Source of the DNA: Haliotis rufescens
Taxonomy: Eukaryota
Reading direction: 5' to 3'
Assembly (NCBI RefSeq): GCF_023055435.1
Contig: NW_025964361.1
Coordinates: forward strand, 25,482,001-25,546,000
DNA length: 64,000 bases
Shown here: positions 1-61,921 of the stretch, piece after piece
Layout of the letters: each line of letters opens with the position of its first letter
Numbering within the stretch: position 1 is the stretch's first letter
Made by a program: the position numbers and the translations under genes
Notes under the pieces: model-generated
The model's input: the letters and a program-made list of their open reading frames with translations, nothing else
Database searches by the model: none
Told to the model about the DNA's origin: nothing

Positions 1-1560
1 CACACTGCAGACATATACTCTCACAAGGTGCCCCTGTGATGTGATTGAAGCATTGCTACTCACGGTGAAGACATATACTCTCGCAGAAAGGTGCCCCTGT
101 GATGTGATTGAAGCATTGCTACTTATGCTGCAGACATATACTCTCGCAAGGTGCCGCTCTGATCTGATTGAAGCTATTGCTACTCATGCTGCAGACATAT
201 ACTCTTGCAAGGTGCCCCTGTGATCAGATTGAAGCTATTGCTCCTCACACTGCAGACATATACTCTTGCAAGGTGCCCCTGTGATCTGATTGAAGCTATT
301 GCTACTCACACACCGGACATATACTCTCGCAAGGTGCCCCTGTGATCAGATTGAAGCTATTGCTCCTCACACTGCAGACATATACTCTCGCAAGGTGCCC
401 CTGTGATCTGATTGAAGCTATTGCTACTCACACACCGGACATATACTCTCGCAAGGTGCCCCTGTGATGTGATTGAAGCTATTGCTACTCACACTGCAGA
501 CATATACTCTCGCAAGGTGCCCCTGTGATCAGATTGAAGCTATTGCTCCTCATACTGCAGACATATACTCTTGCAAGGTGCCCCTGTGATGTGATTGAAG
601 CTATTGCTACTCACACTGCAGACATATACTCTCGCAAGGTGCCCCTGTGATCAGATTGAAGCTATTGCTACTCATGCTGCAGACATATACTCTCGCAAGG
701 TGCCCCTGTGATCAGATTGAAGCACTGCTACTCATGCTGCAGACATATACTCTCGCAAGGTGCCCCTGTGATGTGATTGAAGCATTGCTACTTACGCTGC
801 AGACATATACTCTCGCAAGGTGCCCCTGTGATCAGATTGAAGCTATTGCTACTCACGCTGCAGACATATACTCTCGCAAGGTGCCCAAGTGATGTAATTG
901 AAGCTATTGCTACTCACACTGCAGACATATACTCTTGCAAGGTGCCCATGTGATCAGATTGAAGCTATTGCTACTCACACTGCAGACATATACTCTCACA
1001 AGGTGCCCCTGTGATCAGATTGAAGCTATTGCTACTCATGCTGCAGACATATACTCTCGCAAGGTGCCCCTGTGATGTGATTGAAGCATTGCTACTCATG
1101 CTGCAGACATATACTCTCGCAAGGTGCCGCTCTGATCTGATTGAAGCATTGCTACTCACACTGCAGACATATACTCTCGCAAGGTGCCCCTGTGATCAGA
1201 TTGAAGCTATTGCTAGTCACACTGCAGACATATACTCTCGCAAGGTGCCCCTGTGATCTGATTGAAGCATTGCTACTCACACTGCAGACATATACTCTCG
1301 CAAGGTGCCCCTGTGATGTGATTGAAGCTATTGCTACTCACACACCGGACATACACTCTCGCAAGGTGCCCCTGTGATGTGATTGAAGCTATTGCTACTC
1401 ACACTGCAGACATATACTCTCACAAGGTGCCCAAGTGATCAGATTGAAGCTATTGCTACTCACACTGCAGACAAATACTCTCACAAGGTGCTCCTGTGAT
1501 CAGATTGAAGCTATTGCTACTCACGCTGCAGACATATACTCTCGCAAGGTGCCCCTGTGA
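1..1560. repeat. 60/61-bp tandem array (~25 units, runs off the window) derived from the calpain-15 exon 3' end plus splice donor
   Basis: Unit ctcacactgcagacatatactctcgcaaggtgcccctgtgatcagattgaagctattgcta; the rightmost copy is the exon itself. Confidence 0.95.
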
Positions 1561-1669
1561 GTGTGGCTAGTCCCTCGATACACTTCCCCGCAACCATGGC
1601 CTCATAGCTGCCATGTAACTTGGCCATTGCCTTCTCGATAAGAGGAACCCAGAGTTGTCTTCTCTTGGC
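1525..1669 (-). CDS. CAPN15: Calpain-15 exon ([48 protein letters not shown]); gene continues beyond the left edge
   Basis: Acceptor gattttcag; motif LWxxLIEKAxAKLHGSY...LTGAP; donor C|GTGAGT at 1524 (phase 1). Confidence 0.92.
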
Positions 1670-1999: not shown

Positions 2000-2183
2000 C
2001 TGAGAGTAGATGAGCATGCCGTGCATATTGCAGGGAAGCAGATCATCGATGAGGACAATCTGCCAAGTCCCGTCCTTACACAGGCGCACCTGATACACCC
2101 CCTCCTCACAGTACTTCTTCGTCAGAATGATCTTCTCCACAAGCTCGGGTCTCTCAGCCAGCACAGCCAGGGAACTCAAAAAC
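2000..2183 (-). CDS. CAPN15: Calpain-15 exon ([18 protein letters not shown]...[23 protein letters not shown]...YSQ)
   Basis: Acceptor ttttcag; the first G completes the Trp codon. Calpain motif GxYxVRLxxDGxWxxVxIDDxLP. Donor CAG|GTAAGT. Confidence 0.93.
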
Positions 2184-2356: not shown

Positions 2357-2436
2357 GCATGCAGTATCATGCAGTAACATGCAGTATCATGCAGTAACAT
2401 GCAGTATCATGCAGTAACATGCAGTATCATGCAGTA
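2357..2436. repeat. 10/20-bp intronic minisatellite (gcagtatcat/gcagtaacat)n
   Basis: Direct inspection. Confidence 0.85.
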
Positions 2437-2505
2437 TTTTACATTCTCATCAGTGTCATCACATTTATCGGTTTGTGGAAGCTATCCAGACTTGAAAATA
2501 CGCAC

Positions 2506-2714
2506 CAGCAATTTCCCAGAATTCCCTGGGAGATGTCCTCGGGCATCGGAGTCCTGTAAACCACCCAGGGTTGCTTCATCTCAGCTCTGCTAGACGGTGC
2601 AATTTTGTCCGGACGCAGCCACTGAATCTCCATATTAGCTGAAGGTTTGGGAGGTTCAATATACAGAGACTTTGGGGCAGGGAGAAAGGAGTCATCCACA
2701 AACGGCGTCTTGTT
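2506..2714 (-). CDS. CAPN15: Calpain-15 exon: start of the CysPc protease core with the catalytic Cys (NKTPFVDDSF...WLRP...DISQGILGNCW)
   Basis: Acceptor gatttcag at 2715-2716; calpain motifs FxDxxF, WxRP and QGxLGNCW; donor TG|GTGCGT (phase 2). Confidence 0.93.
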
Positions 2715-2959
2715 CTGAAATCACAACATGGTCAATCACATCAGTGACATTCTGGCATGATCAGCACATAAAGCAGAACAGGGCTTTACTTACTTGTTTT
2801 ACTGGGGGTCCATGGTCTAGAATACCAGCTTAACTAGGTTAGAAGATTAAAATGCCCTTGTAATGTTAAAACAAAGGGAAAATTGGGTAACTTGTACTAG
2901 CCCCGGGCTAGCAGGCTAGTGTTACGTTCTAACCCAGCTTATACATGTCAGCATGGCTA

Positions 2960-4451: not shown

Positions 4452-5822
4452 CTGCTTGCAGAATAGAACTATAGTTTCCCATAGTTCCAGAGCCTCATGT
4501 TCTTCCGATTTCCTCATTTCTTCCATCAAGGAGCTTTCCTGTCTCATCAGTGTTCCTGGACCAGCAGGAACAAGAGCCTTGGAACGTTTATTTCTTGCCG
4601 ACTTACACATATTACACTTCACAGCAGTGGCATCGTTCCGATATGTGCACATGGAACACTGCCAGTTTGTGGGAGTCAGCCCCTCCCCAACTCCCCCTTC
4701 GCGTCTGCTCGACCCATGTTCATGTTGAGCATGCCCACAAGCCCCACACTCCGCCAACTCATTGCTGTTCAGTAGAGTACACTGCGGACACTGCCATTTA
4801 GATTTACTGTTGTGTCCAGCAGTTTTGGCACACCCACACATGAAACACACATGATGCTGGTCTGTATTGTCGTACGTGCACCGCGTGCACGACCACACCT
4901 CTGTGCCCAAACTCGGGGACGGACCTGGCTCTGGTGAGAGAGGCCCACGGGGAGATCGGTGAAAATATCTCACTGAATCTTGTTTAAATTCTATAGGAGT
5001 CTTTGGAGCTGTGTCGGTTTGATCTCTTGGGCAACTGCAATGATCGCACTGCTTGGCCCAGGAAGGGTTGAATGAAAAGCTGCATCGCCTACAAGTCCAC
5101 TCACTACCTGCGTCAAGCTGTCCACTTGTAGATGGTTTTATAACCTGTTTAGATCCACTTGGTTTGGGGGTAGTTGTCACCGGTGCAGTCTTACTATTTG
5201 CTTTCATCACTTCCTCGCCGTCTGGCTCACCTCGAGGAGCAGACGGCACAAAGTCTGTGAGGTCAATGACGTCTGGGACTGAGGTCGGGACTCGAGATAC
5301 TCGTGGAGCTCCACACATGCTACATCTTTTATCAGGAGCACCGTTCAACAATGTGCACTTACTACAACTCCACTCCTTGTCGCCATTTTGTTTCCCACCG
5401 GACGCTCCGTTTACCTGAGACTGATTTTCTTCACCAACCAAAATGCTTTCCCGCTCCTGATTTTGGATGTCAAGTTTCATTTTCGGTCTTGTGATTGGAG
5501 AGGAGGAAACAGACCCTGTCGATGAGCTTGTAGATTTTTTTCCATCCTTGGAATTTTTCTGTTTCAAAGGTTTTTTCTCCTTGGTCGCCCGTTCCCCATC
5601 TTCAAAGACATCATCTGAAGTTGAGGATATTCTGGAGTCTCTCTTGCCAGATGCTGCCACTCCGTTCGAATTGGATTTTTCCGTGGGCTGGTCTTCCCCA
5701 TTGGCTGAGTTAGAAAAAGATGTTCCACAAGCTGAACACTCAATGGTGTTGATATCATTGATGAGAGTACATGTGTCACACTTCCAGTCTTGGAGGGTAT
5801 CATAGTCCATAGGTTCTCCCAT
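4452..5822 (-). CDS. CAPN15: Calpain-15 / small optic lobes (SOL), first coding exon: six RanBP2/NZF-type zinc fingers
   Basis: ORF 4431-5822 has six W-x-C-x2-C-x3/4-N-x6-C-x2-C motifs (WKCDTC, WSCSKC, WTCRRC, WSCTRC, WQCPQC, WQCSMC). In-frame stops lie upstream of ATG 5822. Acceptor atttcag at 5904-5905, so the exon starts at 5903. Donor CAG|GTTGGT at 4451, phase 0, joins in frame to the protease exons. Confidence 0.93.
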
Positions 5823-47222: not shown

Positions 47223-47223
47223 G

Positions 47224-49200
47224 TTGAGTAAACATTGCATGGCTGATTATGATAGTAATATGAAAGGATTGGGTGCTCTTTTACTTCTGTTGAGTAAACA
47301 TTCTATGGCTGATAATTATAGTAATATGAAAGAATCGGGTGCTCTTTTACTTCTGTTGAGTAAACATTGCATGACTGATAATTATAGTAATATGAAAGGA
47401 TTGGGTGCTCTTTTACTTCTGTTGAGTAAACATTGCATGACTGATAATTATAGTAATAAGAAAGAATCGGGTGCTCTTTAACTTCTGTTGAGTAAACATT
47501 GCATGACTGATAATTATAGTAATATGAAAGGATTGGGTGCTCTTTTACTTCTGTTGAGTAAACATTGCATGGCTGATAATTATAGTAATAAGAAAGAATC
47601 GGGTGCTCTTTAACTTCTGTTGAGTAAACATTGCATGACTGATAATTATAGTAATATGAAAGGATTGGGTGCTCTTTTACTTCTGTTGAGTAAACATTGC
47701 ATGGCTGATAATTATAGTAATATGAAAGAATCGGGTGCTCTTTTACTTCTGTTGAGTTAACATTGCATGGCTGATAATTATAGTAATATGAAAGAATCGG
47801 GTGCTCTTTTTCTTCTGTTGAGTAAACATTGCATGACTGATAATTATAGTAATATGAAAGAATCGGGTGCTCTTTTACTTCTGTTGAGTTAACATTGCAT
47901 GGCTGATAATTATAGTAATATGAAAGAATCGGTTGCTCTTTTTCTTCTGTTGAGTAAACATTGCATGACTGATAATTATAGTAATATGAAAGAATCGGGT
48001 GCTCTTTTTCTTCTGTTGAGTAAACATTGCATGACTGATAATTATAGTAATATGAAAGAATCGGGTGCTCTTTAACTTCTGTTGAGTAAACATTGCATGA
48101 CTGATAATTATAGTAATATGAAAGAATCGGGTGCTCTTTAACTCCTGTTGAGTAAACATTGCATAACTGATAATTATAGTAATATGAAAGGATTGGGTGC
48201 TCTTTTACTTCTGTTGAGTAAACATTGCATGGCTGATAATTATAGTAATATGAAAGAATCGGGTGCTCTTTTTCTTCTGTTGAGTAAACATTGCATGACT
48301 GGTAATTATAGTAATATGAAAGAATCGGGTGCTCTTTTTCTTCTGTTGAGTAAACATTGCATGGCTGATAATTATAGTAATATGAAAGAATCGGGTGCTC
48401 TTTTTCTTCTGTTGAGTAAACATTGCATGGCTGATTATTATAGTAATATGAAAGAATCGGGTGCTCTTTTTCTTCTGTTGAGTAAACATTGCATGACTGG
48501 TAATTATAGTAATATGAAAGGATTGGGTGCTCTTTTACTTCTGTTGAGTAAACATTGCATGACTGATAATTATAGTAATATGAAAGAATCGGGTGCTCTT
48601 TTACTTCTGTTGAGTAAACATTGCATGGCTGATTATGATAGTAATATGAAAGAATCGGGTGCTCTTTTACTTCTGTTGAGTAAACATTGCATGGCTGATT
48701 ATGATAGTAATATGAAAGAATCGGGTGCTCTTTAACTTCTGTTGAGTAAACATTGCATGGCTGATTATGATAGTAATATGAAAGAATCGGGTGCTCTTTT
48801 ACTTCTGTTGAGTAAACATTGCATGGCTGATTATGATAGTAATATGAAAGAATCGGGTGCTCTTTAACTTCTGTTGAGTAAACATTGCATGGCTGATTAT
48901 GATAGTAATATGAAAGAATCGGGTGCTCTTTTACTTCTGTTGAGTAAACATTGCATGGCTGATTATGATAGTAATATGAAAGGATTGGGTGCTCTTTTAC
49001 TTCTGTTGAGTAAACATTGCATGGCTGATTATGATAGTAATATGAAAGAATCGGGTGCTCTTTTACTTCTGTTGAGTAAACATTGCATGGCTGATTATGA
49101 TAGTAATATGAAAGAATCGGGTGCTCTTTTACCTCTGTTGAGTAAACATTGCATGGCTGATTATGATAGTAATATGAAAGAATCGGGTGCTCTTTAACTT
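47224..49200. repeat. 66-bp minisatellite, ~30 units
   Basis: Unit ttgagtaaacattgcatggctgataattatagtaatatgaaagaatcgggtgctcttttacttctg. Confidence 0.95.
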
Positions 49201-49635
49201 CTTCTGCGTTAACATGGCATGACAGATTAACTAGAGTATTAGAAAGAACTGTGTGTTCTTTAACTACTTTTGAGTGGTAATGTCATGAAATAAAGATGAT
49301 TCATGTTTCCCAGTTTTCATGAAACCTCATGTTTATTCAATCCATATTTTTAATCTGTCAATACCAAGGCACTATGTCATTTCAGTTCACGATTGCGGAA
49401 ATTCAGCCTCATCGTGTGAAAAAATGAAATGCCCCAAGTGTTAGTTTGGTTGTGAAAATGACTTTCTTTGTCATGAGAAAAAGGAATTAATTATGCAAAT
49501 AATCAAATTCTTTGAGGTTACTATGGAAACAACCCATTTTTAAAGTTGCTGTTTATGAACATAAACATGTTGTTTGACGTTTGAAGGACAAGTTGGACTT
49601 AATTCAAAGAGTATATTATATTACTTGATGAATTC

Positions 49636-54769: not shown

Positions 54770-57700
54770 CTACAACCAATGCTACATCCCTACAACCCAT
54801 GCTACATCCCTACAACCCATGCTACATCCCTACAACCCATGCTACAATCCTACAACCCATGCTACATCCCTACAACCCTTGCTACATCCCTACAACCCAT
54901 GCTACAACCCTACAACCCATGCTACATCCCTACAACCCATGCTACATCCCTACAACCCATGCTACAATCCTACAACCCATGCTACATCCCTACAACCCAT
55001 GCTACATCCCTACAACCCATGCTACATCCCTACAACCCATGCTACAACCCTACAACCCATGCTACATCCCTACAACCCATGCTACATCCCTACAACCCAT
55101 GCTACAATCCTACAACCCATGCTTCAACCCCACAACCCATGCTACAACCCTACAACCCATGCTATATCCCTACAACCCATGCTACATCCCTACAACCCAT
55201 GCTACATCCCTACAACCCATGCTACAATCCTACAACCCATGCTTCAACCCCACAACCCATGCTTCAACCCCACAACCCATGCTTCAACCCCACAACCCAT
55301 GCTACAACCCTACAACCCATGCTACATCCCTACAACACATGCTACATCCCTACAACCCATGCTACAACCCCACAACCCTACAACCAATGCTACAACCCTA
55401 CAACCCATGCTACAACCCCACAACCCATGCTACAACCCCACAACCCATGCTACAACCCTACAACCCATGCTACAACCCCACAACCCATGCTACAACCCCA
55501 CAACCCATGCTACAACCCCACAACCCTACAACCCATGCTACAATCCCACAACCCATGCTACAACCCCACAACCATACAACCCATGCTTCAACCCTACAAC
55601 CCATGCTACAACCCCACAACCCATGCTACAACCCCACAACCCATGCTACAACCTCACAACCCTACAACCCATGCTTCAACCCTACAACCCATGCTACAAC
55701 CCTACAACCCATGCTACAACCCCACAACCCATGCTACAACCCCACAACCCTACAACCCATGCTACAACCCTACAACCCATGCTACAATCCCACAACCCAT
55801 GCTTCAACCCTACAACCCATGCTACAACCCTAAAACCCATGCTACATCCCATGCTACAACCCTACAACCCATGCTACAATCCTACAACCCATGCTACAAC
55901 CCTACAACCCATGCTACAATCCCACAACCCTGCTTCAACCCTACAACCCATGCTACAACCCCACAACCCATGCTACAACCCTAAAACCCATGCTACAACC
56001 CCACAACCCATGCTTCAACCCCACAACCCATGCTACAACCCTACAACCCATGCTACAATCCTAAAACCCATGCTACAACCCTACAACCCATGCTACAATC
56101 CCACAACCCATGCTTCAACCCTACAACCCATGCTACAACCCCACAACCCATGCTACAACCCTAAAACCCATGCTACAACCCCACAACCCATGCTTCAACC
56201 CCACAACCAATGCTTCAACCCCACAACCCTACAACCCATGCTACAACCCTACAACCCATGCTACAACCCTATAACCCCACAACCCATGCTTCAACCCTAC
56301 AACCCTACAACCCATGCTACAACCCTACAACCCATGCTTCAACCCCACAACCCATGCTTCAACCCCACAACCCTACAACCCATGCTACAACTCTACAACC
56401 CTACAACCCATGCTACAACCCCACAACCCATGCTTCAACCCCACAACCCTACAACCCATGCTGCAACCCTACAACCCATGCTTCAACCCCACAACCCATG
56501 CTTCAACCCCACAACCCTACAACCCATGCTACAACTCTACAACCCTACAACCCATGCTACATCCCCACAACCCATGCTACAACCCAACAACCCTACAACC
56601 CTACAACCCATGCTACAACCCTACAACCCATGCTACAACCTCACAACCCATGCTACATCCCCACAACCCTACAACCCATGCTACAACACTAAAACCCATG
56701 CTACAACACTAAAACCCATGCTACAACCCATGCTACAACCCTACAACCCATGCTACAACCCCACAACCCATGCTACAACCCCACAACCCATGCTTCAACC
56801 CCACAACCCATGCTTCAACCCCACAACCCATGCTTCAACTCTACAACCCTACAACCCATGCTACAACCCATGCTACAACCCCACAACCCATGCTTCAACC
56901 CCACAACCCTACAACCCATGCTACAACCCTACAACCCATGCTTCAACCCCACAACCCTACAACCCATGCTACAACTCTACAACCCTACAACCCATGCTAC
57001 ATCCCCACAACCCATGCTTCAACCCCACAACCCTACAACCCATGCTACAACTCTACAACCCTACAACCCATGCTACATCCCCACAACCCATGCTACAACC
57101 CAACAACCCTACAACCCTACAACCCATGCTACAACGTCACAACCCATGCTACATCCCCACAACCCTACAACCCATGCTACAACACTAAAACCCATGCTAC
57201 AACACTAAAACCCATGCTACAACCCTACAACCCATGCTACAACCCTACAACCCATGCTACAACCCCACAACCCATGCTACATCCCCACAACCCTACAACC
57301 CATGCTACAACCCTAAAACCCATGCTACAACACTAAAACCCATGCTACAACCCTAAAACCCATGCTACAACACTAAAACCCATGCTACAACACTAAAACC
57401 CATGCTACAACCCTACAACCCATGCTACAACACTAAAACCCATGCAACAACCCTACAACCCATGCTACAACCCTACAACCCATGCTACAACACTAAAACC
57501 CATGCTACAACCCTACAACCCATGCTACAACCCTAAAACCCATGCTACAACACTAAAACCCATGCTACAACCCTACAACTCATGCTACAACCCATGCTAC
57601 AACCCTACAACCCATGCTACATCCCCACAACCCATGCTACAACCCATGCTACAACCCTACAACCCTACAACCCATGCTACAACCCTACAACCCATGCTAC

Positions 57701-57818
57701 AACCCTACAACCCATGCTACAACCCTACAACCCATGCTACAACCCTACAACCCATGCTACAACACTAAAACCCATGCTACAACCCTACAACCCATGCTAC
57801 AACCCTACAACCAATGCT
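54770..57818. repeat. ~3-kb 20-bp-period minisatellite (ccctacaacccatgctacat and variants), preceded by (GT)n
   Basis: Direct inspection; source of all ORFs at 54729-57931. Confidence 0.95.
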
Positions 57819-58307
57819 TGTTGTTCAAGGCGCCTACATGGAGCAGGTGGTCACTCAGTGACTTGCCTGAACGTGTGTCATCCTACCCTGTCCATGTGAG
57901 ACATCACTGGTGTGACATGAAATATAACTGAAAAATTGCTGTCTTGAAATATTTTGCTCAAACCACCCAATACATACACAGGATATCCATCAGGTTCACA
58001 CTTTTAGCGTACAATGAACTTGTTTACATTGCTTTTCCAAATTATAAAACTTTCCTTCTTGGAAACAGTGCAAGGTTAAGGTCATTGTGAGATTGGGCAA
58101 TAAAGACATGTCGTGTGTGCACAGACTCTGTAATGAGACAAGCGTCACGAGTTGACTCTACTTAATGCAGTGACACATCTTGACCCTCCATGCAGGAGGT
58201 ATTGGGATGACGCAAGCACTGTAGGGAACTGAACTGGACCAGACCAGACCGGACTGAGGGAACTGACTGTAGGTTTGACCTAGTACTGTTGGTATTTTCT
58301 CAAAGGG

Positions 58308-60287
58308 GCTGGTGACAAACAAGTCAGATCTGTAGGATAAGGTAGGGAATATTCTCAGAGTAGCTGGTGAGAAACAAGTCAGATATGTAGGATAAGGTAG
58401 CGAATATTTTCGGAGTCTCTGGTGAGAAACAAGTCAGATTTGTAGACGGGGAGAAACAAGTCAGGTCTGTAGGAAAAGGTTGGGAATATTCTCAGAGTAG
58501 CTGGTGAGAAACAAGTCAGATCTGTAGGATAAGGTAACGAATATTTTCGGAGTAGCTGGTGAGAAACAAGTCAGATTTGTAGACGGGGAGAAACAAGTCA
58601 GGTCTGTAGGAAAAGGTTGGGAATATTCTCAGAGTAGCTGGTGAGAAACAAGTCAGATCTTTAGGATAAGGTAGGGAATATTCTCAGTTTAGCCAGTGAG
58701 AAACAAGTCAGATCTGTAGCCGGTGAGAAATAAGTCAGATCTGTAGGAAAAGGTTGGGAATATTCTCAGAGTAGCTGGTGAAAAACAAGTCAAATCTGTA
58801 GGATAAGATAGGGAATATTCTCAGAGTAGCTGGTGAGAAACAAGTCAGATCTGTAGGATAAAGTAGCGAATATTTTCGGAGTCTCTGGTGAGAAACAAGT
58901 CAGATTTGTAGACGGGGAGAAACAAGTCAGGTCTGTAAGGTAAGGTAGGGAATATTATCACAGTTTACCAGTGAGAAAAAAGTCAGATCTGTAGGATAAG
59001 GTAGAGAATATTCTCAGTTTAGCCAGTGAAAAACAAGTCAGATCTGAAGCCGGTGAGAAATAAGTCAGATCTGTAGGATAAGGTAGGGAATATTCTCAGA
59101 GTAGCTGGTGAGAAACAAGTCAGATCCGAATGATAAGATAGGAAATATTCTCAGAGTAACCGGTGAGAAACAAGTCAGATCTGTAGGATAAGGTATCCAA
59201 TATTTTCGGAGTCTCTGGTGAGAAACAAGTCAGATTTGTAGACGGGGAGAAACAAGTCAGGTCTGTAAGGTAAGGTTGGGAATATTATCACAGTTTACCA
59301 GTGAGAAAAAAGTCAGATCTGTAGGATAAGGTAGGGAATATTCTCAGTTTAGCCAGTGAAAAACAAGTCAGATCTGTAGCCGGTGAGAAATAAGTCAGAT
59401 CTGAATGATAAGGTAGGGAATATTCTCAGAGTAACCGGTGAGAAACAAGTCAGATCTGAATGATAAGGTAGGGAATATTCTCAGTTTAGCCAGTGAAAAA
59501 CAAGTCAGATCTGTAGCCGGTGAGAAATAAGTCAGATCTGTAGGATAAGGTAGGGAATATTCTCAGAGTAGCTGGTGAGAAACAAGTCAGATCTGAATGA
59601 TAAGATAGGAAATATTCTCAGAGTAGCTGGTGAGAAACAAGTCAGATCTGAATGATAAGGTAGGGAATATTCTCAGAGTAACCGGTGAGAAACAAGTCAG
59701 ATCTGAATGATAAGGTAGGGAATATTCTCAGAGTAACCGGTGAGAAACAAGTCAGATCTGAATGATAAGGTAGGGAATATTCTCAGAGTATCTGGTGAGA
59801 AACAAGTCAGATCTGAATGATAAGGTAGGGAATATTCTCAGAGTAGCTGGTGAGAAACAAGTCAGATCTGAATGATAAGGTAGGGAATATTCTCAGAGTA
59901 GCTGGTGAGAAACAAGTCAGATCTGAATGATAAGGTAGGGAATATTCTCAGAGTATGTGGTGAGAAACAAGCCAGATCTGAATGATAAGGTAGGGAATAT
60001 TCTCAGAGTATCTGGTGAGAAACAAGCCAGATCTGTAGGATAAGGTAGGGAATATTCTCAGAGTAGCTGGTGAGAAACAAGCCAGATCTGTAGGATAAGG
60101 TAGGGAATATTCTCAGAGTAGCTGGTGAGAAACAAGCCAGATCTGTAGGATAAGGTAGGGAATATTCTCAGAGTAACCGGTGAGAAACAAGTCAGATCTG
60201 AATGATAAGGTAGGGAATATTCTCAGAGTAACCGGTGAGAAACAAGCCAGATCTGAATGATAAGGTAGGGAATATTCTCAGAGTAGC
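58308..60287. repeat. 55-bp minisatellite with interspersed ~27-bp half-units and higher-order structure
   Basis: Unit ctggtgagaaacaagtcagatctgaatgataaggtagggaatattctcagagtag. Confidence 0.95.
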
Positions 60288-61299: not shown

Positions 61300-61921
61300 T
61301 GGTGGGGCATGGACGTGAGGCGGTGGGGTTGACACCAAGAGTTGGGTTGGCATGGACTGAGGTTGGGTGGGGGGTGGACCTGAGGGGGTGGCTTGATTGC
61401 ATGAGATAGTGTGGCATGGACTGAGGTTGGGTGGGGCATGGACGTGAGGGGGGTGGGGTTGACACCAAGAGTTGGGTTGGCATTGATTGAGGTTGGGTGG
61501 GGCATGGACGTGAGGGGGGTGGGGTTGACACCAAGAGTTGGGTTGGCATGGACTGAGGTTGGGTGGGGCATGGACGTGAGGGGGGTGGGGTTGACACCAA
61601 GAGTTGGGTTGGCATGGACTGTGGTTGGGTGGGGCATGGACGTGAGGGGGGTGGGGTTGACAACAAGAGTTGGGTTGGCATGGACTGAGGTTGGGTGGGG
61701 GGGTGGACGTGAGGGGGGTGGCTTGATTGCATGAGATAGTGTGGCATGGACTGAGGTTGGGTGGGGCATGGACGTGAGGGGGTGGGGTTGACACCAAGAG
61801 TTGGGTTGGCATTGATTGAGGTTGGGTGGGGCATGGACGTGAGGGGGTGGGGTTGACACCAAGAGTTGGGTTGGCATTGATTGAGGTTGGGTGGGGCATG
61901 GACGTGAGGGGGTAGGGTTGA
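61300..61921. repeat. G-rich ~66-bp minisatellite
   Basis: Unit gggtggggcatggacgtgaggggggtggggttgacaccaagagttgggttggcatggactgaggtt. Confidence 0.9.

Follow-up and report, generated by a model that had tools for sequence, protein, structure and literature searches.

Mirage minisatellites have been described in amphioxus, in Adh3 (Canestro et al. 2002, as cited in PMC3087553), in the globin genes BflGb6/9 (Ebner et al., PMC3087553), and in PGBD5 and troponin C (Pavelitz et al. 2013, PMC3902484). Regular splicing is undisturbed there though many units carry AG/GT, the cores of the arrays are homogenised and their edges diverged, and it has been proposed that a unit's exonic part could turn into a genuine exon (PMC3087553). 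Length instability between haplotypes or tissues has been shown in amphioxus (PMC3087553, PMC3902484). A related case is the 37-bp VNTR in intron 7 of human F7, the first element of which spans the exon/intron junction (Borensztajn et al. 2006, PMC1557585). Although functional, its pseudo-donors stay silent; the site selected is always the one furthest upstream (PMC1557585).

We describe here a 61-bp array in intron 4 of a calpain-15-like gene of the red abalone, Haliotis rufescens. It begins in a stretch of 64,000 nucleotides of contig NW_025964361.1, the whole of which is called the window below. The array is best explained as a mirage-type intronic minisatellite, which very probably leaves the protein unchanged and whose spare copies are very probably silent.

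The likeness to the amphioxus mirages is close. In both, the unit spans an exon/intron boundary, the authentic boundary comes first, and many units keep AG/GT; units that are 81-100% alike, with cluster edges outside the homogenisation, are a further common trait. Donor-side and acceptor-side forms are known in amphioxus, and the abalone gene has both. The abalone host differs in being a mollusc and not a cephalochordate, and the copy numbers differ as well, with 2-6 in the amphioxus globin mirages versus ~29 in the intron 4 array and 38 in an acceptor-type array of the same gene. With the human F7 VNTR the array shares a junction-spanning first element and an authentic donor followed by pseudo-donors, and probably also splicing at the most upstream site, which in the abalone we infer. 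F7 has 5-9 identical sites, whereas the abalone array has 21 GT sites, most of them changed at -1 by CpG decay. The behavior of F7 was shown with 50 minigene constructs, whereas that of the abalone array is inferred.

The host gene

The host gene is annotated as XP_046359756.1 under the NCBI name "calpain-15-like," in agreement with the original prediction of a calpain-15. Pfam finds three RanBP2-type zinc finger stretches in exon 1 (Zn_ribbon_RanBP, PF00641, E=8.5e-22) and Peptidase_C2 in exons 2-4 (PF00648, E=9e-14). Zinc fingers combined with a Peptidase_C2 core place the gene, as judged from domain content, among the calpain-15 (SOL) calpains. With exon 4 as the query, a library-wide HMMER search retrieved a 1,049-aa protein (P0002) at 100% identity. 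Its 90% cluster has five members, including the calpain-15-like proteins of Haliotis rubra, H. cracherodii, H. rufescens, and H. asinina; an unnamed member (P0154, 459 aa) corresponds to exon 1 alone and does not reach the exon 4/5 junction. The exons of the H. rufescens protein (P0152) match the window at 100% (tblastn). Exons were searched one by one. The gene has 12 coding exons, of which exons 1 to 4 lie inside the window and the remainder to its left.

All four exons in the window are on the - strand. The coding part of exon 1 (4452..5822) encodes 457 aa with the zinc fingers, identified by Pfam and by a 100% match to residues 1-457 of P0152. Exon 2 (2506..2717) ends in the catalytic-cysteine motif ...GILGNCW, and exon 3 (2000..2183) encodes the calpain core after the catalytic Cys; both are supported by Pfam, by tblastn, and by RNA contig pieces (L007 4504-4717 and L007 3999-4181, respectively). 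Exon 4 (1525..1669) is 145 nt long, runs from phase 0 to phase 1, and encodes 48 residues. It falls within the Pfam Peptidase_C2 match and has a 100% tblastn match to residues 588-636 of P0152, and RNA contigs cover L007 3531-3668.

On the - strand, exon 4 ends in ...ACA GGG GCA CCT TGC GAG AGT ATA TGT CTG CAG C/GTGAGT, with the boundary at window 1525/1524. The authentic 5' splice site, AGC/GTGAGT (1519..1527, -), has a CpG across the junction and is identified from the sequence and from a joint in run X17, described below. An in-frame TAG follows three codons into intron 4 (CGT GAG TAG), and the stop-to-stop open reading frame ends in ...ICLQRE. Exon 5 begins ~106 nt past the end of the array, behind a good acceptor (gttttatgtttcag/CAAACC...) at L005 9656.

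Distant calpain-15 homologues share the peptide at the exon end, TGAPCES(I/V)xLQ, in support of duplication from exon to array. The assignment of TGAP to the linker of the calpain core was upheld: it aligns to m-calpain residues ~207-210, which we take to be the boundary between domains IIa and IIb, the two subdomains of the core. The stretch after ...LQ differs among homologues.

Boundary arrays and other repeats

Tandem Repeats Finder (TRF) reported a 61-bp unit in 25.6 copies at window 1-1560 (91% matches, score 2512). On the fetched flank, it reported 3.9 further copies left of the window (L005 9762-10000), so that the array extends 238 bases beyond the left window edge, to G000:C583:25481762. 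Unit-by-unit reading agreed with TRF that the exon end and its donor had been amplified into an intronic array, as originally predicted. The predicted copy number of about 25 described a real array but fell short of its size, as the array leaves the window. In total it consists of the exon copy plus 28 full intronic units and 1 decayed end unit, or ~29 copies. The part in the window (1..1560, -) holds the exon copy (1524-1560 region) and 25 intronic units, as given by TRF and the unit table.

The 61-bp unit combines the 37 nt at the end of exon 4 with GTGAGT and 18 nt of intron, the exon limits being those given by the tblastn matches of P0152 and by RNA contigs. The 28 full intronic units are 60-61 nt each, except one of 63 nt. 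Intron 4 is 1,868 nt long, and ~1,760 nt of it is array. Identity to the exon copy is 88-98% in the inner units and 61% in the end unit; minisatellites usually look like this at their edges, with a diverged end unit beside a homogenised core. With this pattern, with units of minisatellite size arranged head to tail, and with a boundary-spanning unit whose first (outermost) copy is the authentic exon 4/intron 4 boundary, the array has three of the features by which mirages are recognised. A search of the whole 1.33-Gb genome matched the 61-bp unit to a single locus only. An origin from a satellite or a transposon was rejected on the grounds of this single locus and of the exonic part, which encodes a peptide conserved in distant calpains.

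Reading of the units confirmed the predicted geometry of AG, 30 nt, and GT in phase 1. The AG had been attributed to the duplication junction; it is instead the exon's own ACA GGG, which lies inside the duplicated segment. Both AG and GT are kept in 16 of the 28 units. The GT donor is kept in 21/28, two of which match the real site over 9 nt. One is improved toward the consensus: unit 12 (772..831, -), the sole copy with AGC/GTAAGT, also keeps its AG. The donor is lost in seven of the 28 units (ATGAGT in five, ATAAGT, and ATGAGG), and the AG in five (cactt in two and cacat in three). Coding variants of the cassette are E>K (4 units), LQ>PV (3), I>V (2), R>P (2), and one 3-nt insertion, which is the sole cassette indel; no unit has a stop or frameshift in its cassette. 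The variants singled out in the original prediction (ATGAGT, GTAAGT near 790, lost acceptors, E>K, and LQ>PV) were all found in place.

The gene contains two further boundary arrays. When P0152 was searched against the DNA by tblastn, residues 862-876 were matched six extra times. A second donor-type array, 74 bp in 9.8 copies, lies at the start of intron 9 (L005 3117-3843; G000:C583:25475117-25475843, -). Its unit takes in the final 47 nt of exon 9 together with GTGAGG and a further 21 nt of intron 9. The spare donors are intact in 8/9, and the 47 nt of exonic sequence are not divisible by 3. An acceptor-type array, 36 bp in 38.4 copies, lies at the end of intron 11 (L006 7690-9038; G000:C583:25469690-25471038, -), with a unit of ...ttctgttacag/ and the first 15 nt of exon 12, the last exon. 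The copy adjoining the body of exon 12 is the one found in the annotated protein.

Other repeats were noted in the gene and around it. A minisatellite of 35 bp x 29 (L005 7662-8674) starts 52 nt behind the intron 6 donor, and another of 76 bp x 15 (L005 1548-2684) starts ~40 nt behind the intron 10 donor; both are without exon sequence. Four arrays of the gene thus sit at intron 5' ends, within 52 nt of the donor. The neighbourhood is rich in minisatellites, with about ten large ones in the window and its flanks. Among those in the window are 66 bp x 31 (47223-49275), 20 bp x 152 (54770-57818), a nested array with 55/137/330-bp periods (58297-60287), and 66 bp x 9.5 (61301-61921). These large minisatellites give rise to long spurious open frames and to strong swings in GC skew. 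Intron 3 holds a dispersed repeat at window ~1800-1940 (L007 3842-4008) and at L007 4844-5000, which is found on many contigs in dozens of 77-99% copies and has very high contig depth in all 4 runs; it is probably a small transposable element. Intron 2 holds a 10/20-bp microsatellite-like array, (CATGCAGTAT)n, at window 2358-2437. The window also contains 562 masked N in two stretches, at ~11.2-11.7 kb and 17.1-17.3 kb.

Decay and possible use of the array copies

The 28-unit alignment gave no sign of purifying selection on the 30-nt cassette. Distinct variant states number 15 over 30 cassette columns (0.50/column) versus 10 over 25 spacer columns (0.40/column). Counted manually on the unit alignment and the peptides, the cassette changes comprise ~7 nonsynonymous and 4 synonymous ones. 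The CpG at the splice junction (AGC/GT) is intact in the real exon and kept in 4/28 copies, the others having TG (17), CA (6), or TA (1). Its loss is plain CpG decay, as likely to abolish a donor as to alter the codon. The AGs were scored with a crude position weight matrix built from the gene's 11 real acceptors, the real sites being scored leave-one-out. The array AGs scored -0.8 to -7.3 versus 0.5 to 13.8 for the real acceptors. On this matrix the array lacks a 3' splice site in the range expected of an alternative cassette microexon. The original prediction had also noted that the AG has no polypyrimidine tract and that the array may be silent, and the evidence favors this. On the strongly favored account of a silent mirage, the copies evolve neutrally.

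Annotated proteins and RNA-derived contigs bear on the use of the copies. Four annotated Haliotis calpain-15-like proteins (1,047-1,049 aa) read ESICLQ/PNPIRNK across the junction, without an insert, and no isoform longer by 10 aa is annotated in the four Haliotis species. Run X17, an RNA-like run from a sister species ~2-3% diverged in introns, provides two informative contigs. Contig 25 passes straight from L007 3525 (window 1525) to L007 1656, the joint having GT..AG ends, and continues through exon 5 into exon 6. Its upstream side is only 30 nt long, all within the repeated part, and so is compatible with any donor copy. Contig 27 spans exons 4, 3, and 2. Joints inside the array, including the predicted junctions from 1525 into array AGs, were absent from the Logan contigs of 4 runs (3 of them RNA-like), which are of low depth and from which rare forms are dropped. 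In the same-species RNA runs X15 and X16, gene depth is ~4.5 and unique intron sequence is present too; no junction across intron 4 was found in their contigs at this depth. In every run the contigs are interrupted at this repeated 30-nt stretch, which is unavoidable in a de Bruijn graph. The RNA runs also contain short array-derived contigs (depth 5.6 and 8.5), which we read as pre-mRNA or DNA carry-over, given that unique intron sequence is present as well. A comparison of exon 4 with short proteins derived from transcript assemblies gave 51 calpain fragments, none above 90% identity and hence none from Haliotis. Cassette variation, CpG decay, weak acceptors, insert-free proteins, and the contig joints together indicate that the array copies are probably not used in mRNA.

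The silent mirage would have started with a tandem duplication of a 61-bp segment over the exon 4/intron 4 boundary and then expanded to ~29 copies by slippage or unequal exchange, whereby an ancestral intron of roughly 170 nt may have grown to its present length. The duplication may have been tolerated because the first donor remains attached to a defined exon. The spliceosome would pick the most upstream donor, the one on the real exon, and the whole array would be removed as intron. By analogy with human F7, the spare donors would be passed over since the most upstream site wins, and the F7 model suggests exon definition or 5'-to-3' scanning as the mechanism of choice. The spare donors would then be silent pseudo-sites, and the spare AGs codons of the exon carried along in the duplication. 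A spare donor that was used without prior splicing would expose the in-frame TAG, which would mark the transcript for decay.

That last outcome is the core of a different reading, which we consider improbable: in some transcripts, splicing from one of the 21 spare GT donors would lead through the in-frame TAG to nonsense-mediated decay (NMD), and the length or donor content of the array would set calpain-15 output. Donor retention in three-quarters of the units, with two sites identical over 9 nt and one GTAAGT, speaks for it, as does the stop that follows directly (CGT GAG TAG). The F7 pseudo-sites were indeed functional in minigenes once the first site was disabled, but they do not compete at all while it is intact (PMC1557585). 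The contigs, in which NMD targets are hard to see, show no joint that starts at an array donor, and the free CpG decay of the donors (7 lost and 17 changed at -1) argues against selection. The original prediction went another way, to a self-generated cassette array from which single 30-nt units are occasionally spliced in, so that the protease core gains (R/W)APCESICLQ at its hinge. Sixteen units do have an AG, 30 nt of open frame, and a GT in phase 1, and 15 of those 16 lie at a sufficient distance from the first donor. As predicted, the spacers are too short for introns, the shortest genuine intron of the gene being 322 nt. The site also precedes a variable stretch of the protein, and the general model was published for the amphioxus globins (PMC3087553). 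The absence of stops and frameshifts would also fit weak constraint, in numbers too small to tell. Against this, every array AG scores below every real acceptor of the gene, the cassette is no better conserved than the spacer, the four Haliotis species have no annotated isoform with 10 additional aa, and no such joint occurs among the contigs of the 4 runs, so that no annotated or assembled transcript carries the insert. The sister array in intron 9, of the same build, has a 47-nt exonic part and thus no frame to preserve, which makes the frame-keeping 30 nt of intron 4 probably a one-in-three coincidence. The prediction of a cassette array was accordingly not sustained, and we regard it as highly unlikely. 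Least likely of all is that mis-assembly produced the array or its length. Short-read contigs are unable to bridge it, which would leave room for such an error, but the units differ in an ordered way, with shared variants and 88-98% identity to the exon copy. The array is also real DNA in a second species: X14, a DNA-like run from a sister species, joins the 3' end of the array to unique intron (L007 1351-1868) and has array contigs at a depth of 90-800 versus ~32 for single-copy sequence. In addition, 43-73% of the words of the stretch are present in 13 DNA runs from 4 studies.

Significance of the abalone arrays

The silent mirage is an ordinary member of a described class of repeats, and the idea that its units could become cassette exons is already in print (PMC3087553). 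A partial literature search found no report of mirage minisatellites in molluscs, the term being used in this sense only for amphioxus. Rogers' model (in the form cited in PMC3087553) and the potato RdRp case (PMC4974935) likewise treat a tandem duplication containing AG/GT as raw material for new exons or introns. In these sources the new sites are used, whereas the abalone array is without sign of use.

It is very unlikely that the spare sites are not wholly silent, whether through a tissue- or condition-specific insert of 10 residues at the hinge or through donors that divert transcripts to decay. If this were true, a minisatellite of variable length would serve as a heritable control over the form or dose of calpain-15, and, with many such arrays in the genome, it would represent a general route to new exons or to gene tuning.

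Taken alone, the abalone array adds a further example to a repeat type already described and changes little. It does offer a natural test of splice-site choice, with one real donor, 21 near-identical ones downstream, and a normal annotated protein. Three boundary arrays in a single gene suggest that the red abalone may be as rich in mirages as amphioxus. The abalone may thus provide a second system in which to ask what causes minisatellites to form at exon boundaries and whether new exons or introns ever grow out of them.
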